Origin: Hypanus sabinus
Lineage: Eukaryota
Assembly (NCBI RefSeq): GCF_030144855.1
Contig: NC_082717.1
Location: forward strand, 86,924,001 to 86,988,000
Length of the DNA: 64,000 nt
Direction of reading: 5' to 3'
Shown: positions 6,062-59,931 of the stretch, one piece after another
Layout of the letters: every line of letters begins with the position of its first letter
Numbering within the stretch: position 1 is the first letter of the stretch
Notes under the pieces: model-generated
Told to the model about the DNA's origin: nothing
Database searches by the model: none
The model's input: only the letters and a program-made list of their open reading frames with translations
Position numbers and translations under genes: made by a program

Positions 6062-8746
6062 TTACCCAGGGATGGATTTTCCTGTTTTTTCTGAACATCT
6101 AATGAAGTGCAGGTTGGCTGTAAAGGGATATTTTGTGCTATTTACCATCTCCTCCCGGAACTTGCGCTGAGTGATGGCATAAATAAACATGTTGGTGCAG
6201 GAGCTGAATAATTGAAGCATTGTTCCAGTGGTGCCTGGGATAAAATAATAACCTCTCAGTACAGAATACGATCCTTTGATTCGCTGAATTGTGAGACTTG
6301 CCACCTGTGTCATCCAGAACAAGATAAAACTGGCTGGAATTGTGAAGAGCAAAATAATGGATCTTCTTCGATTCCTCATCTCTTGGTCGTCCTTCTCCAC
6401 CCCATTCTGCTGACCCCTCAGTTTCCTGCGGACTGTACTGGCCCTGATGATGTGACTGACAGTGACAGCGTTCAGCGCCAGGATCCGCATGAAAGGAACG
6501 ACTGGGGTTAAAAGTTGGTGGCCCCAGTAAAAAGCTTCCCACACTGTTAATATTTGAAAGTGATACGACTCCAAGCATTTCCGTGCCTCGTACCTGAAGG
6601 GCCACGGGATGTTGGTTAACACACCCAGCACACTCACCACTGCAATAACAATAGCTGCACCTTTCTCAGTGCAGTATCTGATCTTCAGCCTCTGGAAGCA
6701 AATGGCCACCGTCCGGTCCAAGGTGAAGGCAACAGTGAGCCAGACGGAGCAGGCAATGGAAATGTAACCCATTGCATCAATAATCTTGCACTCGGGAGAG
6801 TAAAAAATGAAAATTATCTTCTTGAGAATGACATTAAATATGACAACAAGTAGATCTGCCACGGCCATTGCCAGAAGATACCAAGTGACACCTTTGGAGA
6901 GTCCACACCGCCCTCGTGATAGAGTTACAATTGCCACCAAGTTAGCTGTGAATATTGGAGAAGTAAATAATGTAAATTAGTCAAGTGAAGGGGAGAAACG
7001 GAGTGATTGTTAATTATTGCAGGTTTAACAGCTGATATGAAATAAATGAGGGGAATATGGGTGAACAGATAAATTGTCCATGAAACACAAGATGTAACGA
7101 GTTGAACTGGTGCAGTAAAATTCCTCAGTACAGACTCAGCAGTGTGGCATTTGGGATTCCATATTTTACCTCAGGGATGGGCTGGAACTGGAATCAAAGA
7201 GGTAGTGAGGCTCCATGGCCAACAATGGAAACCGCTTGGATGATTTGAGGAGTTGGACATCCAGCTGGGTTAACTCGTTCTCACAGGGAACGTATTGTTC
7301 TCTCACCTGACCTGAATAATTAGTGTTGCGGGTAAACCCAACCGTGTCAACCTCAGGATGGAAATGTCAGAACATTCCTTCTTCCAGCTTACATGGGTTT
7401 TGTTCCTCTCTCTTCACCTCATCATTTTGACTACTTGCAGTCAATTCCTGCTCACACTCTGACAACAGACGCTGGTTAAACGGCAGCTCGGGAGGGCAGA
7501 ATCTGGTTACCCTGCAAAAACTAACTGAGGACAGGCAAGCCAGCTATCTGGCCGTCACGTGCAAGAAGAGTGGGGTCAGTGTGGGTTATTTGTAGTGCGC
7601 GGTCACTGGGGTGAAATGGCAGTCCAGCACTTTCTGCAACACTTTACAGTGAGCTGTAAGATTGGGGTTCAATTCCTGCCACTGTCCTTAAAGAATTTGT
7701 ATGCTTTCCTCATGTATCTCCTCTGGGTGTTCCAGTTTCCTCCCGGTTAGGCTTAGTGAGTTTTGGCATGCTGTCTGAGTGTCAGAAGCATGATTGCACT
7801 TGCAGGCTGCCCAGCACGATCCACGCTGATTTGATTCAGCTCAAATGAGAGGGATCCACTCACGCCTTTGTCCACCTCCTGTGTCGCATCTTTACCACTT
7901 GCCAAGTTGTCATTGGCTTCTCCTTCCTAACCCCACACAAATCTCTCAGCCTCTGCATTCCTGCTTTTGGAAATGGCTTTTATCTTCTGATAGCATCGCT
8001 CTCCACTCCCCACTGTGTGCTTCAACGTACAGTCAAGCTAATCACTGGTGTTTGTCGGCATCAGGAACCAGTGAGTGGAAGGCTGGTGTTGTAAACAAGA
8101 CGTGCTTACAGTAAATGGAGGGAAGCTAGAGAAATCAGACTGAGGGACAACATGAAATGAAACACTAGTTTCAACTGTGGCCACATTTCAGGGAACTTCA
8201 TTGGGTGTTTTAGGGTTTGAGGATTCTAGGCTGGTTGTAAGAACTCCAGAAGTGCACGTTCATTGTTCCTTTGCACACAATTCATCAGCAGAGTTTAACA
8301 GCACTGAAGACATTGGATGAATTATCTCACATTGCAGACCATGATATAGAACAACATGGGTCTATTTACATATAATACATCACAATTTCAGGGGAACAGT
8401 GTAAATAAACCAGCAGGACTTGGAAATCAAGTGATCTGGGACCCAACACCCAAACACAGTGCAAATCCAAAGGTACAGGATGAAGGTAATAAGACTAAAA
8501 GCCAGTAAATGTGACTGAGAGACCAAGTAAAATCAGGGTAAAAGAGAAGAATATCAGTGATACTTCAGACTTGGAATAATTGTCAGAAATAAGCAAGGCT
8601 GAACAAATCCAAAACCAAATTCCATATCAGAACTGTCAAGGAGGCAATGGTTAGAAAGACTTACAGAGAACTCCAACGACTGCCAGGATCCGGTAGAAAT
8701 AAAATGCAGTATCAACCATCAGGTAGACTAGTTCTTTCTTTCCCAT
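6062..8746 (-). CDS. GPR139/GPR142-like class A GPCR, paralog 1; join(complement 8665..8746, 6062..6945), about 321 aa
   Basis: Exon 2 encodes seven-TM class A motifs: LAMAVADLLV (TM2), FTLDRTVAIC (DRY variant), NIPW (TM4), TPVVPF (TM5), SCTNMFIY..KFREE (TM7/helix 8). Exon 1 reads MGKKELVYLMVDTAFYFYRILAVVGVL, followed by a GTAAGT donor at 8664. The acceptor is TTCACAG|CTAAC at 6946/6945. The phase-1 join gives ...GVL-S-NLVAIV (TM1 GxxxN). Family assignment is from recalled motif similarity. Confidence 0.88.
7595..7845 (+). mobile_element. Degraded tRNA-derived SINE (V-SINE-like) in the intron of paralog 1
   Basis: B-box-like GGGGTTCAATTCCTG, followed by a V-domain-like CTCTGGGTGTTCCAGTTTCCTCCC. 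Confidence 0.45.
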
Positions 8747-8789
8747 GTTTACAGAAAAAAATTTGTTCTTTGAATCCACTCACTCAGTT

Positions 8790-8945
8790 AGAGCCTTTAT
8801 TTATACAGGCAGGAACCATAGAGTGACGTGATCATTGTTAGTTACTGGGATCAGAATAAACACATTACAGCATTAACACCATTTCTGAGACACCAATTAA
8901 CAAATAAACAACAGAATCTGGTCAGACGCACCTGGTATACAAGCA
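8790..8945 (-). promoter_or_regulatory. Putative core promoter of GPCR paralog 1 (TATA box at 8796-8805)
   Basis: TATAAATAAA on the minus strand, about 50 nt upstream of the ATG. It lies in a block that aligns with the upstream regions of paralogs 2 and 3. Confidence 0.6.
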
Positions 8946-9499
8946 CTGGGATGGAAACTGAAGGTCACTAAACTGGAAACACAAAGGAGTTTTTAACCTA
9001 TCCTACCCGCTGTGGGTTTGTAACAGTGACCCACTCATGACTTTGTCCATCTCCTGTCCACATAACTTTACTGCTTGACAAGTCTTCCATGAATTCTCCT
9101 CACTGGAGAGTGGAAGGGAAGAGGGAATGGAGCCAAGTGTGAGTGGAGTGGTAATGTGATAAAGAATGTAGAAGAGAGTTGGGGATGTGTTGAGTATAAA
9201 CATGGAAGCTGTTGGGAATAGAGTGTGAAAGGAACAATGTGAGAAAGGAATTGGTAATGTGGCCACAGAATGTAATAACTTAGACCTGGCCCCAAGGAGC
9301 TTCTCATGGGTGGTCCAGTGACCAAAATCCCATTGAATGCCAAGCATAGGTGGTTGGACTCTAGGTGATGGTCATTGCCCAGCATGTGTTATTCATTACT
9401 TCTCAACCCATGCTTGAAAGTTATCCTGGGCTGTTCATTCTAAGAGGGATGGAAATTGGACAATCATCAGTATGTATATATATATATACACACACACAG

Positions 9500-9945
9500 A
9501 AAGGTGTTGGAAAAGGGCCAGTAACGTCATGAAGGATCCCACCCACCCTGTTCATGAACTATTTGTCCCATTCGAATCAGGGAGGAAGCTACAGAGCATC
9601 TATGCCAGGACCACCAGACTCTAAAGCAGTTACTCTCTCCAAGCTGTAAGGCTGATTAACATCTCCACCCACTAACCCACCCCACCACAACTCCAACCAC
9701 TACTACATCATTTTCCACCTGAATCTCTTTATTACAGAAATTCTTGTGTCTGGTGTCACTTTATGGACATACAATTAATCTATATGTATAAGCTCTCTTA
9801 TGTAATTATATTAATTGTTTTTATTATTATCAGTGTGTTCTCTATCTTATTGTGCTTTATTTGGTGCTGCATCAGACCTGGAATAACAATTATTTTGTTC
9901 TCATTTACATTTGTATACTGGAAATAACATTAATCTTGAATTTTG
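9500..9945 (+). mobile_element. 3' end of a Rex1/Babar-like LINE
   Basis: Encodes KDPTHPVHELF-like C-terminal ORF sequence similar to 24440-24560, then an AT-rich 3' UTR and a TCTTGAA-type tail. Confidence 0.55.
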
Positions 9946-10549
9946 AACAATCCAAACTTCGGACCCTATCATGGGAGGAAGGTCACTGGTGATGTAGCCA
10001 CAGAAGGTTATGACTTAGACCCAGCACTGAGGAACTCCTGCTGTGATATCCCTGATATTTGACTTCAAACAAGCACCACCATATTCGACTGTGTGAGATA
10101 TTTCTCCAAACACTGGATGGTTTCCCTTGATTCCCATTGTCAGTTTCCTCGCATTTGCACAGTGACCCAGCTCTTGATAGTGACATGACTTCCTACTCTC
10201 TTGCTTTCAACTGCCATATAAGAACCTATATATAATTCATTGACAATGGACCTGATTCATATTCTGATTGTGAATAGTTGTGAAGACTTGCATCTGCATT
10301 ACTTGCTCCTCTCTGACCTGTGAGAATTATCTCTCACAGCAGACAAGAGAGCCTGTAGCACTTCACCTTACTCACACCCCATGCACTGTTGGGAGAAACG
10401 TTTTAGCCATGCCAACCAAGGGAAATAGTTTCAAACAATCTCCCTCATCTAGTCCCTTCGTATTTTCCCAGACTTTGATTAGGTTACATTTTGCATTCTC
10501 TGTTCTAGGGTAAAAATTCCAGCCAATGCAATCCATACCTACAACTGAA

Positions 10550-11200: not shown

Positions 11201-13665
11201 TATAATCTAAAATACATTATCTTCCATGTGTCAAATCCCTAATTTCTCATTACTTCAAGGCTGCGGAGTTATAGGTAACCAGCATGGGTTTTCCCAGACC
11301 TTGTGACCATTATGCAGTCTAAATGCATTCCCAACATAGGCCCTTTCCTCTTCCATGTATTCTATTAACTATTATGATGAAGAGCAAGACTGTATTCTTC
11401 CTGAATGTTTCTCAGTTCCAGTAATGAGGAAGATGATGGTTTAAATTAATGGGAAATGAATGATTGATGTCCATTTAATATCGATCTAAATATCTTTGAT
11501 ATGATAGAATCAGTAGAGGGAGGAAAACAAATCTGATTTCTCATGTTTGGCCAATAGTAACTAAAATATGCTGTTTCCATGTGATCACTATTAATTACAG
11601 TCACTGAACAAACAGGGAAATGGATTGCTTAATTTTAGGCAAGTTATTCTAAAAAAAGCCATAGTTTGGAAAATCCACTAAAGCCTGGAATTAATTTGAA
11701 ACACGTCTTTTAATACTGAAGAAAAGTAAGATCACAAAAGCTGTTTTTGGGATACAAAATAATATCCTTGGTTCATTAATCCCCAGGTAAGTCACAAGGG
11801 TGAACTTCCACTCAAACAAGGAGACTGAACTGCCCAGGTGGTTCAATCCAATTCATCTCCAACAACAGGTGAATAATGCAGTACACACCCTGGTTTTCAA
11901 AATGTGTTCTCCACTCTGCTCTACGGGTGAATTAATGTTCATTATTAAATGTGATCCACTCTTCCATTACTGTCTCTCTCTATTCTTTGTCTCCCTCTGG
12001 AGTTGAGCAGATCTGTTCTGATGAATCTGGTTGCATCAGCCTGCATGGCAGCTCATTCCAGACCTTACCCGATGGTTGAGTGGAAGTTTCTCCCCATCTT
12101 CACTCTGGGTCTCGCACCAATCACTGTAAATCAGCCATCTATGGTTATTGCCCCTTCACCCAATGCACACAGTGATGGAGACCTTGGCCTCTGTTGTACA
12201 CACTGAACACACGCTACACACAACCTCTGAAATTCATTGACAGGATACTGCAGCAAATATGGTCACTCCAGGCTATTAGTTCCCACAACAGAAGATGTAC
12301 TTCCACCTCAGTAATATGATGCTATCAACACTTCAGCCAAATCTGCTTTCAGCTTCTCTGCTCCAAGGAAAAGCACTGCAGACCTTCCATGTACCTATAT
12401 TCCCATTCCCATAGGGAAATCTCTTCTGTCAGCTTCTCTAAGTGTTTCCTGCCCATGTAGAAGTGCCCAATAGCAGGCACCAGATCACAGCTGAGAGTTA
12501 GACATTGGGCTGAGATCCCCGCCTGATTGTGGCTCCCTTTGTCACCATTTCTTGACCCAACAGAGGGGAGAGTTGTATGGTTAGTTCAGACTAGTGCTGA
12601 CATAACAGGAGTACATCTGCTTGATACTTCCTACAAAGTGAAACCCAACAGCATGAATTGCAGCGATGCTTCACTACCAGATGAACTCAATGCCTTCAAT
12701 GCCTGCTTTGAAAGGGAGAATATAACTGCAGCTGTGAAGATTCCTGCTGCACCCAGTGACCCTGTGATTTCTGTCTCAGAGGCCAATGCTAGATTGTCTT
12801 TAAAGAGAGTGAACCCTCGCAAGGCGGAAGGTCCCAATGGAGTACCTGTTAAGGCTCTGAAAACTTGTACCAACCAATTGGTGGGAGTATTCAAGGATAT
12901 TTTCAACCTCTCACTGCTACAGGCAGAAGTTTGCACTTGCTGCAAAATGCAACGATTATACCAGTGGCTAAGAAGAATAATGTGAGCTGCCTTGATGATT
13001 ATTGCCCAGTTGCACTCATCTCAACAGTGATGATATGCTTTAAGAGGTTGGTTATGACTAAACTGACCTCTTGCCTCAGCAAGCACCTGGACTCATTGCA
13101 ATTCTCCTATCACCACAATAGGTCAACAGCAGATGCAAGCTCAATGGCTCCTCATATGGCCTTAGACCACCTGGACAATACCAACACCCATGTCAGGATG
13201 CTGACTACAGCTCAGCATTTAATAACATCATTCCTACAATTCTGATTGATAAATTACAGAACCTAGGCCTCTGTACCTCCCTCTGCAATAAGATTCTCGA
13301 CCTCCTAACCAGAGGACCACAATCTGTGTGGATTGGTGATAATATCTCCTCCTCGCTGACTAGCAGGGGTGTGTGCTCAGCCCACTGCTCTACTCTATCT
13401 ATGCCCATGACTGAGTGACTAGGCATAGCTCAAATACCATCTATAAATTTGCTGATGGTAGAACCATTGTTGGTAGAATCTCAGATGGAGATGCAAGAGC
13501 GTACAGGATCGGGATATTCCAACTAGTGAAGTGATGTCGCAGCAACAACCTTGCACTCAATGTCAGTAAGACAAAAGAGCTGACTGTGGACTTCAAGAAG
13601 GGAAGACAAAAGAACACATACCAATTCTCACTGAGGGATCGAAAGTGGAGAGAGTGAGCAGTTTC

Positions 13666-16600
13666 TTTCTTTTTCAATATTTTTATTGATTACTTGCATA
13701 GACAAATACAAAATACACTATGATATTATGAAAACAGAAACAAAGTTGAAATGCCCCATATCTGTGTATAGTAAATTAAATGTAATATTGAAAAGATATA
13801 TTTTATTCTAATCTAAAACAAAATCAAAACCCATAACAAAAAAAAAGAGAAAAAAAAAGAAAAAAGAAAAAAAAATTCCTGTACATATAGTCATAAATTC
13901 AAACATATAATAGCCGTCATCATTGATGAACTAGTCAAAGATTGTGAAAGTAGTTCCAAAAAGGTCCCCATAATGTGAAAAAGTCTTGTCTAGGTACAGA
14001 AATAGAATACCAAATCTTTTCTAAATTTAAACATGACATAACATCAATCAACCAATGGGCATGAGTAGGCAGAGCAGCATCTTTCCATTGAAGCAACAAA
14101 ACTCTTCTGGCTAAAAGAGAAATAAAAGCTAAACTATGCCAATCATTTGGCTTAAGAACAAAATCATTTCCTCCAACAGTGCCAAACAAGACAGTCAGAG
14201 GGTTGGGTTTAAAGTTTACTTTAAAAAGCTCCAAGAAAGTTGGAAATACTTCTTTCCAAAATTTATCAAGCTGTGGGCAGGACCCAAAGACATGAATTAG
14301 AGAGGCCTCTTCAACATTACACCTGTTACAGTATGGAGAGAAATCTAAGTAAAAAGGAGAGAGCTTGTCTTTAGTCATATAGGCTCTATCAACCACTTTA
14401 AATTGTAAAAGAGAGTGATGCACACATAACGAAGAGGTGTGGACAAGTTTAAAAATTTCATTCCAAGTACCCCCATCAATTGAAATCTGTAGGTCTTGTT
14501 CCCAGAAGTTTTTAATTTTATATAACAGAATGTTTTGCATTGCCAACAACATACTATAAATATTAGAAATAGATCCATTATGAAAGGGTTTCAGAGTAAA
14601 AATTGTATCAATTCATATCTGGACATTTCGGAAATGTATGAAGTTGAGAATGCAAGAAGTCTCTAATTTGTAACTATCTAAAAAGTGAGCTTTACGGAGA
14701 TTATATTTAATAGATAGTTGATCGAATGAGGAAAGACTATCTCCAACAAACAGAATTTTCTAAATTGTAACCAATTCCTCAAAGAATGTTTAACTACATA
14801 ATTATGAGTTAAATTACTTAAGGATAGAGGAATTAAAGAACCAAGAAGAGAAATAATAGAAGATTTATTAACAGAATTAACTTCTGAGGAAACCCAGATC
14901 GGACAGTCTTCATGATTAATATAATATAACCAAAACCAATAAGGTGGCATATATTGACTGCCCAGTAGTAAAACCTAAAATTGGGTAGGGCTAATCCCCC
15001 ATTATTTTTAGTTTTCTGAAGATTAGCTTTGTTTAATCGGGGGGGGGGGGAGGGGGTTTATTCTTCCATAAATAAGAAGATATAATCAAAACTGAAGAGT
15101 CAAAAAAGGATTTAGGAATAAAAATAGGTATGACTTGAAATAAATATAAAAATTTAGGCAAAATATTCATTTTAATAGAATAGGTATGTCCAATTAGCAG
15201 CAAAGAAACGGGAGGCCAGTTTGATAGTACTTTCTTAACATACTCCAAAAGAGTGATGAAATCTTCTTTAAAAAGAGATTTATAACTTTTCTTTTTAAAT
15301 CTTTTTATAAATTTTCAAAGCATAAGAAGAAAAATAGCAAATACAGAGAGCTTGAGAGTACATAATTAATAAGGCTGGAATACAAATACAAAGAGTTAAT
15401 AACAGAGATATAATAAACTCCCAAACTCACACTGTCTTACAAAAGTGGACCCCCACCTCCAAAATAACAACAGCTAACCTAATTGACATGGGCTATTGTA
15501 TCACATCAGGCATATACAGTAGTATCAATAACTCCGCATCTCTATCCAAATAACTAAAGGTGATAAGAAAAAGGTTCAGGAAAGGTCAGTTTAACTCATA
15601 TGAAAATGTTGAATAAATGGTCTCCATTATCGAATAAAATTGAACAAAATTGATTAAATTTTACCGAATGGTCAAAAATGACACTTCTGATTTTTCTAAA
15701 CTCAAACAAGATATAGTTTGGGAAAACCATTGAAATGTAGTTGGGGGATTAATTTCTTTCCAGTTCAGTAGAATAGGTCTTCTAGCCATTAGTGTGACAA
15801 ATGCAATCATCTGTTGAGCTGAGGGGATAAATAAATGTTACCCACCATTGGTAAGCCAAAAATTGCAGTAATAGGATGAGGTTGCAAATTAATACTCAAA
15901 ACTGTTGAAATGATACCAAAAATATCTTTCCAGTATTTTTGCAAGCAAGGGCAAGACCAGAACATGTGGGTCAAATAAGACGCTTCAGAATGGCATCTAT
16001 CACAGATTGGATTAACGTGAGAATAAAATCGAGCAAGTTTGTCCTTAGACATTCGGCCCTATGTACCACCTTGAATTGTATTAAGGCATGTTTGGCACAA
16101 ATAGAACAGGAGTTAACTAATTGTAAAATTTTCTCCCATTGCTCTGTAGGCAAGGGACATCGAAGTTCTTTTTCCCATTCATTCTTAATTTTATCTGACA
16201 TCCCTGGCTGTATTTTCATGATCATATGGCTATTAAACCCTTCTGATAGGGATTTAAACCTAGATTTTTTTTCCTTAATGTCAATTGGGCATGAATTTGG
16301 AAAGGACTGTAACATATTATTCAAAAAATTTCTAATTTGTAAATATCTAAAAAAAATGGGCTCTAGGCAAATTATATTTATTAGACAACTGTTCAAAGGA
16401 CATGAAACAATTATCTAAAAATAAGTCACCAAAACATGTTATACCACTTGTTTTCCATAGCACAAAGGCTTGATCCATAACAGTGGACTTAAAAAGAAAG
16501 TTAGATATAATAGGGCTTGATAAGATGAACTTATTCAAACCAAAACATTTATAGAATTGAAACCATATTCGTAATGTATATTTAACCATAGGGTTAGTCA

Positions 16601-19600
16601 TTTGTTTATTTGTTATTGTATAGCCAGAAAAGCTACTAAACTGAGCGAGCAAGGATAACATAACAGGAATAGATCTCTCAGGGCCAGAGATATATAGTAA
16701 CATATCATCAGTGTATAATGATAGCTTATATGTCCCTTCCCCATGGGTAATACCAAAAATGTTAGATGAATCACGAATAGCAATGGCTAAGGGTTCCAAA
16801 GCAATGTCAAATAGTAGAGGACTTAAAGGACAGCCTTACCTCGTGCCACAAGACAACTGAAAAAAGGGAGATCTTTGATTATTGGTAAGAACCGAAGCCA
16901 AAGGCTGATAATATATTAATTTAATCCATGATATAAATGTTGCACTGAAGTTAAAATTCTGAAGTGTATTAAATAAATATGGCCATTCAACTCTGTCAAA
17001 TGCTTTCTCAGTGTCCAAAGAAATGACACATTCTGGGATTCTAGATGAAGGAGTATAAGTTATATTAATTAATATTCTAATGTTAAAAGATGGATAATGA
17101 TTTTTAATAAATCCGGTCTGGTCCTCAGAAATTATTTGAGGTAGTATATTTTCCAATCTGGTGGCCAATATTTTGGTAAATATCTTGGAATCCACATTCA
17201 GCAAAGATATAGGCCAATATGATACATATTCAATAGGGTCTTTGTCTTTTTTAAGAATTAGAGAAATGAAAGCTTCATAAAAAGATTGTGGTAACTTACC
17301 TACAGTTAATGTGTCCTTAAAATTTTTACATAACCAAGGAGAAAGTATAGAAGAAAAAGATTTTTACAATTCCACAGTAAAACTAGGGGTTTTACCTGAA
17401 TTCATTGGAAAAATAGCCTCTTTTATTTTGGCTTCTGTAATGGGTGCATCTAATGATACACAATCCTTGGCTGTTAATTTTGGGATACTCAGTTTCCTTA
17501 AAAATTCATTCATTATGGAAGAATCGTCAGAAAATTCTGATTGATATAAAGAGCTATAAAATTCTTGAAACTTTATTTATCTCTTTATGATCTACCATCA
17601 GAGTGCCATCTTGTTTATGGATCTTAATGATCTGACATTTAACTGAAGCAGTTTTCAACTGATTAGCCAATAATTTACCAGATTTATCCCCATGTATATA
17701 AAACTGTCAGATTTGGTAAATTGATTTTCAGTTGAAGAGGGTAATAGCAAACTGTGCTCCATTTGAAGTTCAACTCTCTTTTTATGAAGTTCTTTACTAG
17801 GAGTCACAGAGTATGTCTTATCAATTGCTTTATTCTTATCAACCAACATAAGTATTTCAGTGTTAAATCATTTTCTGACTCCAGTAGAGTATGAAATAAT
17901 TTGTTCATGGATAAATGCTTTAAAAGTGTCCCATAATATTCCATTAGACATCTCTTCTGCAGAGTTTGTTGAAAAGAACAAATCAATTTGTTGCTTAATA
18001 AAGTTGAAAAAGTCATGAATCCTGAAGTAGAGTAGAGTTGAACTGCCATGGTTTAACACTTGAGGATGAATCCATTTTCTTAATAGATAGCTTCGAAGGT
18101 GCATGGTCAGAGATAGTAATAGAATCATAGTGACAGTCAATAACATCCGTAAGTAAACAATGACCAATAAAGAAATAGTCAATTCTTGAGTAATTATGAT
18201 AAACATGAGAGAAATATGAAAATTCTTTATCCTTAGGATGTAGAAATCGCCAAATTTCATAAATTCCAGAATCAACCATAAAGGAGTTAATGAGAGTGGC
18301 CGATTTATTTGGAAGAACCTGGTAAACTTAGATCTATCCATCGAGGGATTTAAACAACAATTAAAATTCCCACCCATTATCAGCATATTTAAATTAGGAA
18401 GGGATGTGAATAAACACTTAAAAATTTGGGACAGTCTATATTCGGGGCATAGACATTAACTAAAACAACTTTTTGGTTAAAAAGTAAACCAGTCAGGAGC
18501 AAAATCCTACCCTGTGGGTCTGAAATTGTTTCATAATGAATGAAAAAGGTTGAGGAATCTATAAAAATAGCAATACCTTTTACTTTAGCTTGAGAATTCA
18601 AATGGTACTGCAGATCCTTCCAAAAAAAAAAACATTGACTATCCTCTTTCCTCACACGAGTCTCTTGTGCAAAAAAATTGGCATTCATTCTAGGAAATAC
18701 TTTAAGTATTTTTTTCCGTTTAATCAGATGGTATAGACCATTTGTATTCCAAGAAACAAAGTTAATAATCTTATCCATATTGCTAATATTTATCATAGTA
18801 AATGCACAAGGTTAAACAGAAAGTAAACTCATGAATCTGGAAGAGGAGAGCAGGTTCGAAGAGGAACCGGAAGTTACGACACTTCAGCCATTTTGGTAGT
18901 TTCAAGTCAGCCCATGAAGGAAAAATTAAGCGAAAAGCAAAAGAGAAACCCCCTCCCCCCACCCACGAAAACCCAAGAAAAAGCCAGAGAAGGGCCAGCA
19001 AGCAGACTAACACTAATTTTACCCCCATCTCTCAAGACTGCAGCTCAAAAAAATGAAAAAAGACACAAACCACACATATTCCAAAAAAAAAACAAAGGGT
19101 TAGTATAACAGGAAAAAGTCTGTAAAATTAATATTAAAAAAAGACAAGATTAAGAGAAAAAAACTAAACAGTTAGAGCCTAAAACAGGGTAGCATTATAC
19201 TAATATTGCAATAACACACCAGCACTCTTGTTCAGACACACCCAAACGGATGTGACGTGTCCAAGAAATTAAGATCTTATGGGAAGAAGAAACAACATCT
19301 TGAAAAAAGAAACTGAAAAAAAGACTGAATGCTCCAGCATAAAAGATATAAAAAAATGTTCAAACTTAAAAACATTTAATTAGTAACTTTCAAAATCAAA
19401 AGAATAATAATAAAAAAAGAGTCTCAAAAGAGACAGAAAACAAACCTTTACTTGGACATGTAAAAAGTAGTTGCACTATCAGTCGGCACATATGGATCTT
19501 CAAATTATGGAAGGTCAGAATCTATAAGATAATTGTTAGCTTAAAAAAAGAGCAAAGACAATAAATAACCATTAAAGACAGATAATAAAAATACAATATG

Positions 19601-32907: not shown

Positions 32908-35445
32908 ATGATAATAGATTATATAATCTACCTCTTGAACGATTTTAGACCTCATTACTTCCGGATCCTGGCAGTCATTGGAGTTCTCTGTAAGTCATTC
33001 TAACCATTGCCTCCTTGAATGCTCTGATATGGAACTTGGTGTTGGATTTGTTCAGCTTTGTTTATTTCTGACTGTTATTCCAGCTCTGAATCTTCACTGG
33101 AATTCCTCGTCTCTTCCCTGATTTTACTTGCTGCCTCGCTACCATATCTACTGGGCTTCAGTCTTTGTAGGTCAGCGTCCTTCATCCTTTGCACCTTCAG
33201 ATTTGCATTGGTCAGGCTGTGGATCCTGAATAACAAGGTGTTCATTGATTTCCAAATCCTACTGTCTGATTTTCAAAGAGTGAGGAACAAAACCCATGTG
33301 TGGCACGTGGCCAAGTGGTTAAGGCGTTGGACTAGTGATCTGAAGGTCGTGAGACTGAGGCATTGTGTTGTGTCCTTGAGCAAGGCACTTAACCGCACAC
33401 TGCTCCAGTCCACCCAGCTGAAAATGGGTACCAGCGAAATGCTGGGGTTAACCTCGCGATAGACTGGCGTTCTACCCGGGGGGGGGGGGGGGGAGAGGTG
33501 GGCGGGGAGTCTCGTATGCTCAGTCGCTTCATGCCACGGAAACCGGCATCAGCACCGGCCTGATGAGCCTATAAGGCTCGGAACAGACTTTAACTAGCTA
33601 ACTAACTCATTTTCAACGTAGCCAGATGGTATGATGCATTCCATGTAAAATGACTGATATTGGTAAAATTATTGCTTAAATGTCATTAAATTCTGCTGAT
33701 GGTTTTCCAGAGGTGTATATAGAATAAGAACCTCCATTTAACATCAATAACCAACATTGAATATTCGAAGGAATTTACAGCAATGAAGTTCCTTTGAAAT
33801 GTGACCACAATTGAAACTAAACCATTAACTCAACCTGTCCCTTGGGTTCCCCTTGTCCAAATCTGGAATTCACAGATTTGTCTAGCTTCACTCTCCTTTC
33901 TAAACAAAAGATTCTCTCATGGATCCCTGTCACTACCACATCCCAGTAAATGGAGATTGTTAGGTCAAGAAATGAAGAGCTGGAGATGGACCGTGTTGAT
34001 AAGGGACAGCTGGAAATTGCATTAAGTTTCCAATTACAGGGTGTGAGCAGGAAGTGGCTTCAATCAGTCAGATAGGTGAAGGAAAGAGTGGGGAACAAAG
34101 CCCATGTGAAACTGGAACAAATAATGTTCTAGATATAGCTCAGGTAGGCAAACTGGGAACACTATTGCATCACTTGCCAAGGCTTGTTGTTCAGAATGGT
34201 TGAGTGAACAGAATGTTCCCTCTGAGTATGAGTTCAACCAGCTGAATGTCCAACTCCTCAACTCATCCAAGTGGTTTCCATTGTTGGTCATATTGGGTGC
34301 TCCAATGGGTGACTGACTGGAGCCTCACTGCCTCTTTGATCCCAGTTCCAGCCCATCTCTGAGTTAAAATATGGAAACCACATTGCCACACTGCTGAGTC
34401 TGTGTTGAGGAAGTTTACTGTACAATTCCAAACTCATTACACCCCTGTGTTCCGTGGTCAATTTAGCTGTTGGCCCATTTGACCTTTCCATTTATTTCAT
34501 GTCAACTGTTCAACCTGCAATAATTAGCAATTACTCCATTTCTCCCCTTCACTTGACTAATTTACATTGTTTACTTCTCCAATATTCACAGCTAACTTGG
34601 TGGCAATTGTAACTCTATCACGAGGGCGGTGTGGACTCTCCAAAGGTGTCACTTGGTATCTTCTGGCAATGGCCGTGGCAGATCTATTGGTTGTCATATT
34701 TAACGTCATTCCCAAAGTGATATATTACTATTATAAACCTCCCCTTTGCAACATCATACATACCATGAGTTACGTATCTCTGGCTAGTTCCGTCTGGCTC
34801 ACGGTTGCCTTCACCTTGGACCGAATGGTGGCCATTTGCTTCCAGAGGCTGAAGCCCAGATACTGCACTGAGAAAGGTGCAGCTATCATTATTGCAGTGG
34901 TGAATGTGCTGAGTTTGTTCACCAACATCCCGTGGTATTTCACGTACAGGTCTTATATCTGCTGGGTATCGCTTGATTTCATAAATTCCCTCATGTGGCA
35001 AGCCTTTGACTGGGGGCACCGTATTTTAACCCCAGTTGTCCCCTTCGTGCTGATCCTGCTGCTCAATGTGGTCACTATTAAGCACATTATGATGGCCAGT
35101 GCAGCCCGCAGGAGACTGAGGGGTCAGCGGAATGGGGAGGAGAAGGACGACCAAGAGATGAAGAATCGAAGAAGATCCATCATTTTACTCTTCACTTTAT
35201 CGGCCAGCTTTATCCTGTTATGGATGACACATGTGGTCATTCTTGCAGTTGAGTCGATTACTATGCAGTATTTCGTAATGACATCTTCATATGTCGTGGC
35301 TCAAATGATGGGAGTAATGCTTCAGTCATTCAGCTCCTGTACCAACATGTTTATCTATGCCATCACCCAGAAGAAGTTCCGAGAGGAGATGAAAAATGTT
35401 GTGAAATATCCCTTTAGGGCCATCCTGAGTTTCTGTAGAAATTAG
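32908..35445 (+). CDS. GPR139/GPR142-like class A GPCR, paralog 2; join(32908..32989, 34592..35445), about 311 aa
   Basis: Exon 1 reads MIIDYIIYLLNDFRPHYFRILAVIGVL with a GTAAGT donor at 32990. The acceptor is TTCACAG at 34591, preceded by a branch-point-like GACTAAT. Exon 2 is an open 7TM frame with ADLLV, DRMVAIC, NIPW and SCTNMFIY. Confidence 0.9.
33277..33608 (+). mobile_element. tRNA-derived CORE-type SINE in the intron of paralog 2, with an 8-bp TSD
   Basis: A-box head GTGGCCAAGTGGTTAAGGCG, CORE-like GTGTCCTTGAGCAAGGCACTTAAC and an (ACTA)n-like tail. TSD ATTTTCAA at 33269-33276 and 33609-33616. Absent at the homologous intron position of paralog 3 (~57280). Confidence 0.8.
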
Positions 35446-38400
35446 GGAGAAGAGCTGGAAAATTCAATCCAGGACAGGTGGTAATATTATCGTTCTTGAC
35501 CAGCAAAGCCTTGTACTTCAGAGTCTATGATATCATGCTAAAATAAAAGAATCTGGTATTGAGCTTTATTTTAAAATTTCTCTGATGAACAGAGCTAGCA
35601 GAAAGAATGTACGAATCATCGGTCTACCTAAAGGTACAGAAGGCAGCCAACCAGTGAAGTTTTTTGAGGGCTGGCTGCCTAATTTCCTTGATTTGGAAAC
35701 CAAGGCTGGATGCATTAAAGTGGAAAGAGCTCACCGCACGCTGGCTCTAAAACTGGGCCCAGGCCAATGCCCTCGACCTGTTCTTGTGCAGTTCCATAAC
35801 TTCGGTGATAAGCAAAGAGTGATGGAGACTTAGAGACACCACGGGACTGATGCCCAGGTTTTAATATATGAGGGATCCAGGCTTATGTTTTTTCAAGATT
35901 TTTTGGCAGCCATTATTTGGAAGCAAGATATCTTATAGGATGGGTAACGTGTTTGTTTTGATTAATACAGTTTTATTATTTGTTTAAATTTGTGGTGCTG
36001 CTCTAGACTGAAGGAGTTTAAACATGATGGTAACAAATTGGTTGATTAATAAATTATACCCTGTTTTCATTTTTGATTATGTTAAATGCCATATTGGCAG
36101 TGGGGCAGAATATGGGGAGCTAGAGGGTTCAGATATCCCCATTAAGTTTGGGGTAAATCTCTTGCTCAGCACTGTTGGCACTTTGTTTTTTGTGAGTGTG
36201 TATTTTTTATTTAGTTATTGCTGCTCAGCTGATCTTAAGTCAGGTTTCTTCCCCTCCGGAGTCACATGACTGTTATAAAGGGTTATGACCAGTAATATAT
36301 TAAAATTGTGCACTTGGAACATTAAGGGGAGTCATTCACCAATCAAGAGAAAGAAAATCCTACTCAACCTGAAAAAGCAGAGGGTGGATATCGTCTTATT
36401 GTAGGAGACACATTTAAATGATAAAGAACATCTAAAACTGCAACAGAATGAATTTGATCAAGTCAATTTTCCACCTTTTAATACCAGGAGTAGGGGGTGG
36501 TCATTTTAATTAGGAAAACTTACCTTTTAAGTTATTAGACTGCATTAAGGATAAATATGGGAGATTTGTGATTGTTGAAGGCTTCAATATATGGAAAGGA
36601 AGATGGTATTTCAATGTTTACTGCCCTCCAGCTCATCCTCTCAAATTCCTAACAGATGCCTTTTTTCAAACTTACAAGCTTTTCAATACAAAACATTATT
36701 GCAGGTGGGGATTTTAATTCTCTCATGGACCCATTGATGGACAGAGCACCTAGTGGTCCCCCATTGCTCTCCTCACCGTCCAAACAAATCATGGGCTTAA
36801 GTGGAGAACTAGCACTTGTGGATGTCTGGAGGTTGTTACATCCCTCAGACAAAGACTTCAGAATTGTTTCTAATCCACACAAGTGTTACACCAGAATAGA
36901 TTTTTTCTAACCCCCAAAACGCCCCTAGATTTAGTTGTATCCTGCACAATTGGAAATATCACTATTTCTGACCATGCAGCAGTAGATTTAAATATTAAGC
37001 CCAAAGATAATTCAGCACGATCTAGGCATTGGAGGCTGAATCCCTTTATTCTAAAAGATAATAAATTTATAGACTACCTTACTTCCAAATTCAAAACTTT
37101 CCTATCTATTAAATCGATGCTCTGGGAAATCACGAATGCGTATGCAAGAGGATTAACTATATATCTTATTCTGCCAGTAAGAAGCGACAAGCTGTGGAAC
37201 AGCACCGCCTAGTGGAAGCAAGGCTTGCAGCAGCTGAAAAGAATTGTATTAATAAGTCTACTGCAGCAAAGTTACAGAATATCACAGTCCTATGCTGTAT
37301 GCTAAACACTTTACTCACACGAGCAGTCAAAAGAAAATTGACATTTGCTAAACAACGATTGTTTGAACATGGTGAAAAACCAGGTAGATAATTGGCTTAT
37401 TTAGCTAGAAAGAAGAATGCCTCTCACACTATTGCTTCAATTAGGGATGGGACAGGATCCCTCACTAGTAATTCTAAAATGATTAATGTTGTGTTTAAGA
37501 ATTTTTATTCTAAACTGTATCAATCTGAGCAATGTAATGATGGACAATTTATGATGGAGTGCTTTTTCAGGAATTTAGATCTCCTAGGCATTTCTTCCGA
37601 ACAAGAGTCCCAACTCAGTGCTCTGTTATCTATATATGAGATACAAGAAGCTGTGAGACAGCTCCAAAGTGGGAAGGTCCCTAGTTCTGATGGACTCACT
37701 AGTGAATTCTACATAGTTCACAGGGTTATTATCAGAGCCATTGCTAAACATGTTCAATCATGCACTTAATTATGGTCTCCTCCCACCATCATTGAGAAAA
37801 GCTAATATCTTAATATCTTAAGAAAGAACCCTGAAGATTGTACCTCCTACAGGCCTATTTCATCGTTAAATGTTGATTTTAAAATCTTATCTAAAACCTT
37901 AGCGTTGCGATTAGAAACTGTGTTACCTTTTATCATAAAAGAGGGTCAAACAGTTTTTATAAAAGGCCATAGATCATCTAACAATATCAGAAGATCACTT
38001 AATGTGAGTCAGGCATGTCAGCAACAGGCAGTGGACGGCTCGGTGGTTTCCTTAGATGCAGAAAAGGCCTTTGATCATGTTGAATGGCCGTATCTTTTTT
38101 TCACTTTAGAACAATTTGGTATGGGCAATAAATTTATTATGTGAGTAAAGGTTCTTCATAATGACTCTCTGGTTGTGATTCTCACTAATGGTGTTAGGTC
38201 AGATAATTTTAGTATTCTGAGGGGCAGCCTGCAGGGCTGCCCTTTATCTCCGCTACTTTTCACACTGGTGAGCGAGCCATTGGCTGAAGCTATTCGATAA
38301 GACCACAAAATATCTGCTCCAGACATAGGACTAAGGTCACATAAAATTACATTGTATGTGGATGATGTTCTAATTTTCTTATCAAACCCTGCTATATCAG

Positions 38401-48629: not shown

Positions 48630-50726
48630 TTAGGGACATGGAGCCTTGGTCCCAGGCAAGACTGGGACACGGAGCCTTGGTCCCGGGCAAGACAGGAACA
48701 GAGGGATGTGGAACACAGCCAGGACCCCTCCTTAGGAACAGGACTTAAAGCCGGGGCTCTACACAGAGTCAGGACCCCTCCTAGGGAGCAGGACATAGAG
48801 CCGGGATTCATACACAGAACACAGAGAGACAGGTCACAAAACAAGGTAGCAGCAAATGGCCAGATCTACCTGGTGAAGGTTGGACACAAACAGTTCCAAA
48901 CAACAACAAACAGTTCCTTATCTAGACATAGCAAGGATCTGGTCTTATTCCCACAGTAGAACTAGACAGCAATACAGGCGAGGTTGTAGGCAAGGGCTTC
49001 GGATGGGAAGGAAACAGTCCAGCAAATGAAGCTGAACCCAGGAGCTATTTATGTAGCCTGCCCAAAATGAGAATCCGGTGCCTCAATTAGAGCACCCAAC
49101 AGAACAAGGGAAAACCGGAAACCTGGAATAAGGTACGATGGACCAGACCATGACAGTACCACCCTTCTTCCCTTATGGGAGCCTCCTGATGACCCTAAAG
49201 GCTTCCCCAGACTATAGATGACACGGCTGGGTAGGGGAGCATTCAACAGGAGAGAACACAGGAGTAACATGACAGCACCTGTGTCACTGGGTCTCTGCTT
49301 GGCTGGACTGTTCTGTCATATGGGGGCTGCTGAAGGCAGACCCAAATGCAAAACACCGTCAGTGAGGTACTAGGAACTGGACTGGACCAGTGTTAGGGAT
49401 GGGACAGGAACACAGACTTGGGCTAGGAAATCGGGAACAGGACAAGGAACTGGGAACAAGGAGCCTGGGCTTGGACTCTGAGCCAGACTGGACAAGGACC
49501 CAGAACCTGGGTCTTGACAGGCTCGATCCCCAGAACTAGGTGAGGACATGACGTGGCTGCAGGACTAGGTGGGGCTTGGGTTCTTCGAGGCCTGGCTGCA
49601 GGACTAGACATGGAACTCTTTTAAGGACGAGGCACATGGACAGGACAAGAACCCAAAGCCTTGACTCGATCTTGGGACACCTGGACATGGAGCCTTGGTC
49701 TTGAGAGAGGCTGTGACACGGAGCCTTTGTCTTGAGACAGGCTGTGACACGGAGCCTTGGACTTGAGACGGGCTGTGACAGGGAGCCTTGGTCTTGAGAG
49801 AGGCTGTGACATGGAGCCTTGGTCTTGAGATGGGCTGTGACACGGAGCCTTGGTCTTGAGACGGGCTGTGACACGGAGCCTTGGTCTTGAGAGGGGCTGT
49901 GACAGGGAGCCTTGGTCTTGAGAGAGGCTGTGACATGGAGCCTTGGTCTTGAGATGGGCTGTGACACGGAGCCTTGGTCTTGAGACGGGCTGTGACACGG
50001 AGCCTTGGTCTTGAGAGGGGCTGTGACAGGGAGCCTTGGTCTTGAGAGAGGCTGTGACATGGAGCCTTGGTCTTGAGATGGGCTGTGACACGGAGCCTTG
50101 GTCTTGAGACGGGCTGTGACACGGAGCCTTGGTCTTGAGAGAGGCTGTGACAGGGAGCCTTGGTCTTGAGAGAGGCTGTGACATGGAGCCTTGGTCTTGA
50201 GAGGGGCTGTGACAGGGAGCCTTGGTCTTGAGAGAGGCTGTGACAGAGGGACCTAAAACACAGAGATGGGACCCCTCCTTAGTAACAGGACTTGGGGCCG
50301 GGCCTCTGCACAGAGTCAGGACCCTTTCTAGGGAGCAGGACATAGGGCCAGGACTCATACACAGAACACAGAGATGGTTCTCAACACAAGGTAGCAGCAA
50401 ACGGCTGGACCTACCTAGCAAAGGCGTGGACACAGAGACAATTCCAAACAACAATGGACGGTTCCTTATCTAGACACAGCAAGGATCCAGTCTTGCTCCA
50501 GCAGTAGAACTTGACAGCAATACAGGCAAGGGCTTCAGGCAGGAAGGAAACAGTCCAGCAAATGAAGCTGAACCCGAACCCAGGAGCTATTTGTGCAGCC
50601 AAAAATGAGAATCAGGTGCCTCAATTAGAGCACCCGACAGAAAAATGGAAAACTGGAAACCTGGAATAATGACTGATGAACCGGACTGTGAACCAGAATG
50701 CAGACTCCACAGACTGGACCATGACA
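48630..50726 (-). mobile_element. Non-autonomous LTR element: 5' LTR 49314-50726, ~158-bp internal region, truncated 3' LTR 48630-49155
   Basis: TGTCAT...ATGACA termini. Long direct-repeat homology between 48720-49155 and 50268-50726. Purine tract AAGGGAAGAAGGGTGGTAC (minus strand) immediately before the 3' LTR. Confidence 0.7.
49689..50246. repeat. Minisatellite, 18 x 31-bp units (GGAGCCTTGGTCTTGAGANNGGCTGTGACAN) with a 4-unit higher-order period
   Basis: Counted directly from the sequence. The unit variants recur in the same order in units 4-7, 8-11 and 12-15 (one substitution in unit 15). Confidence 0.95.
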
Positions 50727-56694: not shown

Positions 56695-56845
56695 TACACC
56701 AGGTGTATCTGACCGGATTCTGTTTTTCATCTGTTAATTGATGTGTTAGACATGGTGATAGTGTTGTAATGTGTTTATAACTAACAATGATCGTGTCGCT
56801 CTATGGTCCCTGTGGATGCCATTTGCCTGTATAAATAAAGGGCCT
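56695..56845 (+). promoter_or_regulatory. Putative core promoter of GPCR paralog 3 (TATA box at 56830-56839)
   Basis: TATAAATAAA upstream of the ATG at 56916. The block is homologous to the other two promoters. Confidence 0.6.
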
Positions 56846-56915
56846 AACTGAGTGAATGGACACAACTGTCAGTATAAGCTTTTTCCTGCTGAAGGGCATC
56901 ATATTTGCTGTGAAC

Positions 56916-59900
56916 ATGATAATAGATTGTATAATCTACCTTTTGAATGGTTTTAAGCCTCATTACTATCGGATCCTGGCAGTCATTGGAGTTCTCTGTA
57001 AGTCATTCTAACCATTGCCTTCTTGAATGCTCTGATAAGGAACTTGGTGTTGGATTTGTTCAGCTTTGTTTATTTCTGACTGTTATTCCAGCTCTGAATC
57101 TTCACTGGAATTCCTCATCTCTTCCCTGATTTTACTCTCGCCTCTCTGTCACATCTACGAAGTTTCAGTCTTATTGGGTGAGCGTCCGTCATCCTTTGCT
57201 CCTTCAGATTTGCAATGGTCAGACTCTGGATCCTGAAGAGCAACATATTCAATGATTTCCAGATCCTACTGGCTTAATTCCAATGTAGTCAGATGGTGTG
57301 ATGTATTCCATGTAAAATGAATGATAATGGGTAGAATTGCTGTCTGCAACGTTTGATTATTCGTCCAATTCTTTAAATGTGGCTAAACCTTACTGATCGA
57401 TTTTCTAAAAGTTTATAAAGAATGAGAACCTCTATTTAACACCAATAACCAACACAGCATTTTCAAAGGACTTTATCGTCAATGAAGTTCATTTGAAATG
57501 TGACCACAGTTGCAACAAACCCAAAACCATCAACTTAGCTTCTGTTATTATCCAATTATCCAAGTCAGGAGCTCACAGATTTCTCCAGTTACCTTCCATT
57601 TTCTAAACAAATGGTTCTCAGTCACTTTGTGTTGATGATACAAAGTTGTGTTGTGTTGGGGGTGTTGTGGATAGTCTGAAGGGTTGTCAGAGGTTACAGA
57701 GGGACATCGATAGGATGTACAACTGGGATGAAAAGTGGCAGAAATCTTCCATGCAGATAAGTGTGAAGTGGTCATATTGGAAGGTCAAATTTTTAGACAG
57801 AATATAATAATGATGATAAGACTCTTGGCAGTGTGGAGGATGTGAGAGATCTTGGGGGTCATGTCCATAGGACACTCAAAGCTGCTGTGTAGGTTGTCAT
57901 TGTTGTTATGAAGGCACATATCATGTGTTGACATTCATCAAACTTGGGATTTCAAGAGCTGTGAGGTAATGTTACAGCTATATAGGACTTCAGTCAGATC
58001 ACACTTGGAGTACTGTGTTCATTTCTGGTCACCTCACTGCAGGAAGGATGTGGATACTATGGACAGAGTGCAGAGGAGATTTACAAGGATGTTGCCTGGA
58101 TTGGAGGGCACACCTAATGAGAATAGATTGAGTGAACTTGGTCTTTTCTCCTTGGAGCGACGGAGGATGTGAGGTGACCTGATCGATGCATGTAAGATGA
58201 TCAGGGGCATTGATCGTGTGGATAGGCAGAAGCTTTTTCCCAGGGCTGAATTTGCTAACACGAGGGGGCATAGTTAAAGGTGCTTGGAAATAGATCTCGA
58301 GCTGTTTATTACACAGAGAGGGCTGAGTGCATGGAATGCACTGCCAGCGCTGGTGGTAGAGGTGTATAAAATAGGGTCCTTTAAGAGCCTCTTAGATAGG
58401 TACATGGAGCTTAGAAAAGTAGAGGGCTATGTGCTAGGGAAATTCCAGGCAGTTTCTAGAGTAGGTAGCATGGTTGGCACAACATTGTGGGCCGAAGGGC
58501 CTGTAAATTTCTGTAGAATTCTCTGTTCTATGTTTACCCTAATAAATGGAGATGTTAAGTTAACAAATGAAGAGCTGGAGATGGACCGCGTTGATAAGGG
58601 ACAGCGGGAAATTGCACCAAGGTCACTGAAAGTTTCCAGTTCCAGGGTGTGAAAAGAAGTGGCTTTCCAATCAGTCAAAATGTGAAGGGAAGAGAGGGGA
58701 AGAAGACACATGTGAGTTTGGTATATAGAATGTTCCTGAGTTTCCACCCTGAGATAGGATCAACTGGGAACTCAATGGCTTCACCTGCCAACACCTTCTT
58801 GTTCAAACCAGGTGAGTGAACAAGATGTTCTCTGTGAGGATGAGTTAAACCAGCTGGATATCCAACTCTTCAACTCATCAAGTGGTTCCCATTGTCAACC
58901 AGATAGGGAGCTCCAATGGCTTCTTACATCTTATGTTTCATTGCCAAATTAGTCTTTAGCCCATTAGCCTCCCCATTTATTTATTTTTAGCTGTTAAACC
59001 TACAGTAATTAACAGTGATTCTATTTTCTCTCATTCACTTGACTAATTTACATTGTTTACTTTTCCAATATTCACAGCTAACTTGGTGGCAATTGTAACT
59101 CTATCACGAGGGCGGTGTGGACTCTCCAAAGGTGTCACTTGGTATCTTCTGTCAATGGCCGTGGCAGATCTACTAGTTGTCATATTTAACGTCATTCCAA
59201 AAGTGATATATTTCTATTATAAACCTCCCCTTTGCAATATCATAAATACCATGAGTTACGTGTCTGTGGCTAGTTCCGTCTGGCTCACTGTTGCCTTCAC
59301 CTTTGACCGGACAGTGGCCATCTGCTTCCAGAGGCTGAAGACCAGATACTGCACTGAGAAAGGTGCAGCTATCATTATTGCAGTAGTGAGTGTGCTGAGT
59401 TTGTTCACCAACATCCCGTGGTATTTCACATACAGGTCTTATATCTGCTGGGTATCGCTTGATTTCATAAATTCTCCCATGTGGCAAGCCTTTGACTGGG
59501 GGCACCGTGTTTTAACCCCAGTTGTCCCCTTCGTGCTGATCCTGCTGCTCAATGTGGTCACTATTAGGCACATTCTGATGGCCAGTGTAGCCCGCAGGAG
59601 ACTGAGGGGTCAGCGGAATGGGGAGGAGAAGGATGACCAAGAGATGAAGAATCGAAGAAGATCCATCATTTTGCTCTTCACTTTATCGGCCAGTTTTATC
59701 CTGTTATGGATGACACATGTGGTCATTCTTGCAGTTGAGTATATTACTATGCAATATTTCGTAATGACATCTTCATATCTCGTGGGTCAAATGATGGGAG
59801 TAATGCTTCAGTCATTCAGCTCCTGTACCAACATGTTTATTTATGCCATCACCCAGAGGAAGTTCCGAGAGGAGATGAAAAATGTTGTGAAATATCCCTT

Positions 59901-59931
59901 TAGGGCCATCCTGAGATTCTGTAGAAGTTAA
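56916..59931 (+). CDS. GPR139/GPR142-like class A GPCR, paralog 3; join(56916..56997, 59078..59931), about 311 aa
   Basis: Exon 1 reads MIIDCIIYLLNGFKPHYYRILAVIGVL with a GTAAGT donor at 56998. The acceptor is TTCACAG at 59077. Exon 2 is open and differs from paralog 2 at 19 of 283 aa (hand count). Confidence 0.9.
57655..58535 (+). mobile_element. CR1-type LINE 3' fragment in the intron of paralog 3
   Basis: HLEYCVHFWSPHCRKDVDTMDRVQRRFTRMLPGL, with tail GTGGGCCGAAGGGCCTGT..TGTTCTATGT. Absent from the paralog 2 intron. Confidence 0.85.

Follow-up and report, generated by a model that had tools for sequence, protein, structure and literature searches.

A tandem trio of receptor genes in the stingray Hypanus sabinus: a constant inner face, diverged outer halves and local gene conversion

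The described receptor that stands closest to the genes considered here is GPR139, which has a paralog in GPR142, and the described process that stands closest to their history is the concerted evolution by gene conversion known from odorant-receptor and opsin genes. Our subject is a stretch of 64,000 nucleotides of the stingray Hypanus sabinus (NCBI RefSeq assembly GCF_030144855.1, contig NC_082717.1, positions 86,924,001 to 86,988,000 of the forward strand), hereafter the window, whose own numbering is used for all coordinates below and which holds three tandem genes, called genes 1, 2 and 3, for class-A G-protein coupled receptors (GPCRs). We favor, with a probability of roughly three in four, the reading that these are functional genes of an old orphan subfamily, that they code two receptor types, and that the inner face of the receptors is kept by selection together with gene conversion. 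On this reading, the trio would belong to an old subfamily within an orphan class-A radiation of sharks and rays, with gene 1 coding one type and genes 2 and 3 the other. The extracellular halves of the two types differ at about half of their positions, so that the types would be expected to bind different ligands, and their cytoplasmic faces are nearly alike, so that they would be expected to address the same transducer. Two causes would keep the inner face constant, namely purifying selection acting across the whole family and gene conversion among neighboring genes, and conversion would persist only where the sequences are still alike and where homogenizing them spares ligand specificity.

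Structure of the three genes and the contrast between their halves

The window contains three open reading frames (ORFs) of 292 amino acids each, at 6062-6940 (minus strand), 34567-35445 (plus strand) and 59053-59931 (plus strand). Each is exon 2 of a two-exon class-A GPCR gene whose exon 1 lies 1.6-2.1 kb upstream, and the spliced products, 321 amino acids for gene 1 and 311 amino acids each for genes 2 and 3, are free of stops. The intron is of the GT..AG type and in phase 1 in all three genes, and it falls within transmembrane helix 1 (TM1; ..GVL/S/NLVAI.., with slashes at the junctions), just before the conserved Asn. Exon 1 ends in ..GGAGTTCTCT/GTAAGT and exon 2 is preceded by ..TTCACAG in the three genes. 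At the protein level gene 1 shares 66% of its residues with genes 2 and 3, and these share 93% with each other. The six exons are as follows, with scores for the Pfam domain 7tm_1.

8665-8746, minus strand: gene 1 exon 1, from ATG to GVL with a GTAAGT donor, coding an N-terminus of about 15 amino acids and the first half of TM1
6062-6945, minus strand: gene 1 exon 2, with a CACAG acceptor, coding the second half of TM1 through TM7, helix 8 and the stop; 60.5 bits
32908-32989, plus strand: gene 2 exon 1, placed by its reading frame and donor
34592-35445, plus strand: gene 2 exon 2, placed by the ORF and the spliced product; 78.2 bits
56916-56997, plus strand: gene 3 exon 1, located by blastn with gene 2 exon 1, frame and donor checked
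59078-59931, plus strand: gene 3 exon 2, placed by the ORF and the spliced product; 77.5 bits

Exon 1 of gene 1 is a 100% match to residues 1-27 of the Hypanus sabinus protein P0010. The 7tm_1 (PF00001) scores, 60.5-78.2 bits for genes 1-3, compare with a gathering cut-off of 30.5. An earlier, sequence-only reading of this DNA had described three intact two-exon seven-transmembrane genes, and the ORFs, splice sites, stop-free products and Pfam matches confirm it; the motif peptides that it cited were likewise all recovered as given, the N-terminus of its third paralog being slightly unlike that of the second. Searching the window by tBLASTn with seven family members matched only these three loci and revealed no further copies or pseudogene fragments.

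Structural positions were assigned on an AlphaFold model of protein P0002, which is 86% identical to gene 2 (predicted local distance difference test score, pLDDT, 86.8; predicted template-modeling score, pTM, 0.83). The model has seven helices and helix 8 (residues 3-37, 45-72, 80-110, 121-144, 161-206, 215-251, 259-286 and 288-299), and its fold matches solved GPCRs with template-modeling scores (TM-scores) of 0.67-0.76. The class-A landmarks that we scored were N1.50, D2.50, the cysteine pair joining C3.25 to extracellular loop 2 (ECL2), R3.50, W6.48, N7.49 and Y7.53; across 83 family members N29, D58, C80, R105, C151, N279 and Y283 are invariant and W238 is nearly so. The prolines P6.50 of the CWxP motif and P7.50 of NPxxY are absent from the window genes, where TM6 reads L-W-M-T and TM7 reads N-M-F-I-Y, and this is a deviation inside class A that does not exclude the genes from the class. 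A look-up in the ESM Atlas returned generic class-A neighbors only.

When the helix boundaries of the model are used to divide outer from inner half, 76 of 143 outer positions (53%) and 30 of 168 inner positions (18%) differ between genes 1 and 2 (Fisher P = 5e-11). The same contrast runs through the family, in which column entropy over the 83 members averages 1.76 bits for outer positions and 0.90 bits for inner ones (P = 2e-15). Genes 2 and 3, in comparison, differ evenly (8% outer, 7% inner), their ratio of nonsynonymous to synonymous divergence (dN/dS) is 0.12-0.37, loops included, and they are under purifying selection throughout. The divergence of ligand-facing parts that the sequence-only reading had proposed therefore holds between gene 1 and genes 2/3 but not between genes 2 and 3. 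Its further expectation, that variation would be enriched at pocket sites, did not stand. The 31 canonical pocket positions differ between genes 1 and 2 in 52% of cases, against 41% for the other outer-helix positions (P = 0.39), and the family-wide comparison of variability is no different (P = 0.23), so that hypervariability specific to the pocket is unsupported. Between genes 1 and 2 the outer half has a dN/dS of 0.71, and the ratio exceeds 1 marginally in the loops and N-terminus only (1.1-1.25), a value compatible with relaxed constraint or with episodic positive selection.

Two public gene models bear on the trio. Residues 1-294 of P0010 match gene 1, and its last ten residues are coded in a separate small exon:

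4427-4456, minus strand: alternative 3' coding exon of gene 1 in the P0010 model, peptide ..DGSMILDPQV, with a TTGCAG acceptor

In that model an ATG/GTAAAT donor at 6146, within exon 2 of gene 1, is joined to this downstream exon, so that in the isoform known from the annotation ten other residues take the place of the final 27, which comprise the end of helix 8 and the tail; the donor at 6146 is absent from genes 2 and 3. P0001, a type-2 protein of Hypanus sabinus that represents a fourth copy, is about 93% identical to gene 2 and is not coded in the window, and the cluster therefore extends past it. The P0001 gene model is probably mis-annotated at its first exon, because that exon leaves the protein without a proper TM1. 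This annotated first exon (MFLSF..ANTFLF) has an 89% identical counterpart at 58730-58813 (plus strand), which lies 264 nt before exon 2 of gene 3.

Gene conversion in the TM1-ICL1 tract and homogenization of exon 2

Our codon comparisons used four close and two distant skate copies, and counts of same-residue codons take only codons that encode an identical residue in both genes. Along genes 1 and 2 the proportion of synonymous differences (pS), taken in a sliding window, is 0 in codons 16-50, 106-125 and 196-220 and 0.33-0.8 elsewhere. Same-residue codons differ at 0 of 63 in these three blocks and at 31 of 110 elsewhere (P = 1.6e-7). One tract, here tract A, spans TM1 and intracellular loop 1 (ICL1) and reaches into non-coding DNA: over the span from 53 nt inside the intron to about codon 59, a single one of 148 nt differs between genes 1 and 2, compared with about 25-30% at neutral sites elsewhere, and the intron upstream of it is about 70% identical. 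The tract, the two further blocks (in intracellular loops 2 and 3, ICL2 and ICL3) and the longer stretch shared by genes 2 and 3 lie as follows.

6851-6998, minus strand: tract A in gene 1, the last 53 intron nt and codons 28-59 (TM1, ICL1, start of TM2)
34539-34686, plus strand: tract A in gene 2, 1 of 148 nt differing from gene 1
59064-59151, plus strand: tract A in gene 3, an 88-nt core identical in the three genes
34828-34884, plus strand: ICL2 block, codons 107-125, gene 1 counterpart at 6653-6709 (minus strand); 0 of 18 same-residue codons differ
35095-35178, plus strand: ICL3 block, codons 196-223, gene 1 counterpart at 6359-6442 (minus strand); 7 residue and 0 synonymous differences
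34448-35522 in gene 2 and 58934-60008 in gene 3, plus strand: stretch homogenized between genes 2 and 3, exon 2 and short flanks

A Sawyer-type permutation gives P = 1e-4 for tract A, and a run test made independently of any choice of blocks yields P = 0.011 for tract A by itself and P = 0.003 for the sum of the three longest runs. An explanation without conversion, in which the identical blocks come from selection on the protein or from a functional DNA or RNA element such as a splicing signal, deserves consideration since no other parts of the protein are as conserved across the family as the blocks, tract A covers a splice acceptor, and synonymous change in ICL2 and ICL3 is slow between stingray and skate. 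We regard it as improbable. Selection on the protein is unable to erase synonymous or intronic differences, and TM7/helix 8, which is equally conserved as protein, has a normal synonymous divergence between genes 1 and 2 (pS 0.44, with 0.35-0.54 along the sliding window). The sites in question also change when other copies are compared. In tract A the stingray and skate sequences differ at 8 of 25 synonymous codons and at one third of intron bases (the last ~52 intron nt are 63-67% identical, and the first 90 exon nt 86-89%), and the three blocks pooled differ between stingray and the four skate copies like the rest, at 19-25%. Among distant paralogs of the skate genome, 45-70% of synonymous codons are changed in each of the blocks, and their loop peptides are still conserved. 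The stingray-skate and distant-paralog divergence indicates that the sites in the blocks are free to change, and a constraint acting on the nucleotides of tract A was rejected on these same comparisons. Gene conversion is thus well supported for the TM1-ICL1 tract of genes 1-3.

The distant paralogs inform the other cause as well. As they vary synonymously and nevertheless keep the loop peptides, it is selection at the protein level that keeps the loops constant across the family, and purifying selection acts family-wide on ICL1, on the DRx-VAIC/ICL2 segment, on ICL3/TM6 and on TM7/helix 8. The sequence-only reading had attributed the constant intracellular face to shared coupling; selection across the family agrees with this, but part of the constancy seen here, in tract A, comes from gene conversion. 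What is new is that the constant inner face has two causes, selection and local gene conversion, the second of which the sequence-only reading had not considered.

A second island of identity occurs at the end of exon 1 and in the first ~130 intron nt (32972-33122, plus strand; 56980-57130, plus strand; ~8560-8682, minus strand), where identity reaches 93-100% between genes 2 and 3 and 83-93% between genes 1 and 2 in surroundings of 50-70%. Either a further conversion tract or a conserved element of the intron could account for this island.

For the ICL2 and ICL3 blocks the evidence of conversion between genes 1 and 2 is suggestive. In both blocks gene 1 equals gene 2 at synonymous sites and synonymous differences set gene 3 apart, although it is overall closest to gene 2. 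Several observations weigh against our interpretation, and most of them concern these blocks. The two blocks are short and, taken singly, marginal: the run test alone gives P = 0.036 for ICL2 and P = 0.076 for ICL3, and the Sawyer-type test of each block alone is not significant. Stingray-skate synonymous differences are few in ICL2 (1 of 17 codons) and in ICL3 (2-4 of 17-23 codons), and part of the identity between genes 1 and 2 may therefore reflect a low local rate. In ICL3 the seven residue differences between genes 1 and 2, mostly K/R, Q/R and V/E, come with no synonymous difference, a pattern that is hard to fit to a single recent conversion and a sample too small to argue for positive selection. 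The blocks entering the test with P = 1.6e-7 were picked after the sliding-window profile had been seen. Finally, the difference in ligands and the shared coupling of the two receptor types are what we infer from the sequences.

The relationship between genes 2 and 3 is of another kind, in that exon 2 has been homogenized as a whole. Over exon 2 with about 140 nt upstream and about 80 nt downstream, the mismatch-only distance K between these genes is 0.075 and synonymous divergence (dS) is 0.11, while in the flanking intron and 2 kb upstream K rises to 0.21-0.26, which compares with 0.20-0.25 for gene 1 against either. This is most simply read as three old copies, two of which, genes 2 and 3, later had their exon 2 homogenized.

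In trees of separate partitions, variable blocks join gene 1 to a sawfish (Pristis) sequence with support 91 and genes 2 and 3 to another sawfish sequence with support 90, and conserved blocks place the stingray-order sequences together with support 92 and reject a clade of gene 1 with Pristis (approximately unbiased, AU, test, p = 0.009). To the points against our interpretation must be added that the variable blocks do not reject a clade restricted to the stingray order (AU p = 0.47), so that the conflict between trees is one-sided and the protein tree leaves the split of genes 1 and 2 undated. The age of this split rests mainly on synonymous divergence, which is 28% outside the tracts, compared with 20-25% between stingray and skate.

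An elasmobranch receptor family and its candidate roles

The trio belongs to a large family. A protein search gave 886 hits, the top 120 of them (E < 1e-75) being without exception shark or ray sequences, and a profile built from the 83 members collected 138 clusters at 50% identity (E <= 1e-30); in the main radiation 10 of 10 sampled representatives are elasmobranch. Relatives outside the elasmobranchs are few, with family-profile scores of 234 bits in salamanders, 203 in coelacanth, and 184 and 120 in two teleosts. A quick tree puts the window genes with sawshark, catshark, skate, sawfish and manta sequences in a clade of 100% support, and the coelacanth and teleost sequences branch outside the elasmobranch group. 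Since this clade spans sharks and batoids, the window genes belong to one old subfamily of the radiation. The hits, the clusters and the entropy contrast together support the earlier proposal of a lineage-expanded family with a common intracellular face and a diversified outer half. Cysteine 41 in ICL1 (RGRCGLS), cysteines 110 and 119 at the ends of ICL2 (AIC..YCTEK) and cysteine 277 in TM7 (SSCTN) are invariant or nearly so among the 83 members, and these cysteines of the cytoplasmic side and inner leaflet are, by this alignment, a hallmark of the family. A literature search on GPR139 in cartilaginous fishes and on chemosensation found no paper describing this elasmobranch family.

Public databases name nearly all of these proteins "probable G-protein coupled receptor 139", with a minority labeled prolactin-releasing-peptide-receptor-like, GPR15-like, vasopressin-V2-like or capa-receptor-like, and this mixture indicates that the database names derive from weak best hits. 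When gene 2 alone is compared with all solved structures, human GPR139 is best at 46 bits and galanin receptor 2 is next at 39; the family profile places GPR139 first at 72 bits and CCR5 next at 54. A fold search gives generic peptide-receptor neighbors, among which GPR139 has the highest identity, at 23-24%. The designation "GPR139-like" is therefore apt insofar as GPR139 is the nearest solved receptor, but it is a best-hit label, with an identity of 23-24% and a lead of 72 over 54 bits. By these scores GPR139 would be the nearest known receptor at a distant remove, and the window genes appear to be a separate branch and not GPR139 itself, because the salamander and coelacanth relatives score 200-234 bits, far above GPR139.

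Sharks and rays have an acute chemical sense, and the combination of few classical odorant receptors with a large undescribed class-A radiation makes that radiation an obvious candidate for chemical sensing. Judged by sequence, the sensing of external or diet-derived chemicals would rank first among possible roles, though tentatively, endogenous peptide or metabolite signaling would come second and be tentative too, and immune sensing would come last and be improbable.

One proposal is that the family is a chemosensory repertoire of olfactory, taste or solitary cells that offsets the tiny odorant-receptor set of cartilaginous fishes. In its favor are the size of the family, its restriction to one lineage, its tandem clusters and the concentration of variation in the outer half; to our knowledge, vertebrate class-A families of this size are nearly always chemosensory. 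Turnover within the subfamily, on the other hand, is slow, as it is old and occurs in both sharks and batoids and the window holds no pseudogene; purifying selection on genes 2 and 3 extends into their loops, and the pocket positions are not specially variable. In the catshark, the reported 2 canonical OR, 6 OR-like, 3 ORA, 3 TAAR and 2 TARL genes (PMC11979771) favor the proposal. Against it, the 50 genes most specific to the catshark 'brain & olfactory epithelium' library include no GPCR (PMC11979771), a weak objection as sparsely expressed receptors would escape such a list. The same paper on sensory organs makes no mention of a GPR139-related family (PMC11979771). We hold this proposal to be rather doubtful. 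Its boldest form is unlikely: the family would be the large set of chemoreceptors that sharks and rays otherwise seem to lack, with sparse expression in olfactory, taste or solitary chemosensory cells, and conversion would maintain a common signaling interface and leave the ligand-facing half free to diverge.

Alternatively, the ligands may be endogenous peptides or metabolites, in which case the receptors would have a neuromodulatory or endocrine role, as GPR139 does, and the family would have diversified along with internal ligands. The nearest structures are the galanin, opioid, somatostatin, chemokine and cholecystokinin (CCK) receptors and GPR139, the model predicts a short ECL2 beta-hairpin as in peptide receptors, and the two types have been kept for long under purifying selection. 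Counting against an endogenous role, receptor families with endogenous ligands rarely reach dozens to hundreds of members per genome, and we know of no matching expanded ligand family. This alternative is possible, if doubtful. Receptors for immune sensing, of the chemokine or formyl-peptide type, are very improbable: chemokine receptors do occur among the better profile and fold matches, yet such matches are generic class-A similarity at 17-20% identity, and nothing immune-related lies in the window, where the intergenic DNA is decayed long interspersed nuclear element (LINE) sequence.

The DNA between the genes consists of decayed LINE reverse-transcriptase pieces and a 31-bp tandem array. 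LINE fragments with reverse transcriptase and zf-RVT matches occupy 12500-18800, between genes 1 and 2, and the array at 49684-50245 has 18 copies with a higher-order period of 124 bp and gives rise to long spurious ORFs on the minus strand. A search of sequencing runs turned up none recorded as RNA that contains the three genes. A short interspersed repeat at ~7650-7840, in the intron of gene 1, reaches a summed contig depth of thousands-fold in sequencing runs of related species; in two possible RNA runs this high-copy repeat is the sole match to the window. Two other runs are DNA of close relatives, as their contigs extend over the intron and flanks. Contig depth in the relatives, a poor measure, is 4-7 fold on the conserved blocks and single-copy on ECL2/TM5, and the higher values fit many paralogs whose conserved blocks are at least 90% identical.

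Comparison with known receptor systems

The cluster supplies three intact genes of two types, with defined tract boundaries, and its mosaic is a clear small example of how a tandem family keeps one signaling face while the ligand-facing half diverges. The comparison with GPR139 (structures 7VUG-7VUJ and 9M42) shows likeness in that both lack the TM7 proline of NPxxY (N-x-F-x-Y) and both have a short N-terminus. Residues F109, H187, W241, R244 and N271 are the contacts of GPR139 with its agonist. In the alignment this set is only partly kept: F109, H187 and W241 align with Y88, H170 and W238 of the window genes, whereas R244 and N271 align with Q/H241 and T/V269, which are variable in the family (2.4 and 3.1 bits). 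Further differences are that GPR139 is single-copy and highly conserved whereas the elasmobranch family is multi-copy, with three members in the window, and that the family has DR(T/M/F) where GPR139 is of the DRY type and TM6 W-M-T in place of W-x-P. The family also has a conserved 12-residue acidic/basic insert in ICL3 that is absent from GPR139, as well as its invariant ICL1 and ICL2 cysteines.

With the chemosensory OR, TAAR, V1R-ORA and T2R families the genes share tandem clustering, many lineage-specific copies, and conserved intracellular motifs combined with a variable outer half. Unlike those families, the window genes have a coding region split by a phase-1 intron in TM1, no pseudogenes accompany them in the window, and their subfamily is old and under purifying selection. 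Concerted evolution of tandem receptor genes offers the remaining parallel. Here too the tracts are short and near-identical, reach into non-coding DNA and are lineage-specific, and a whole exon has been homogenized between genes 2 and 3. The difference is that between the diverged receptor types the tracts coincide with the cytoplasmic face, and the ligand-facing half is untouched.

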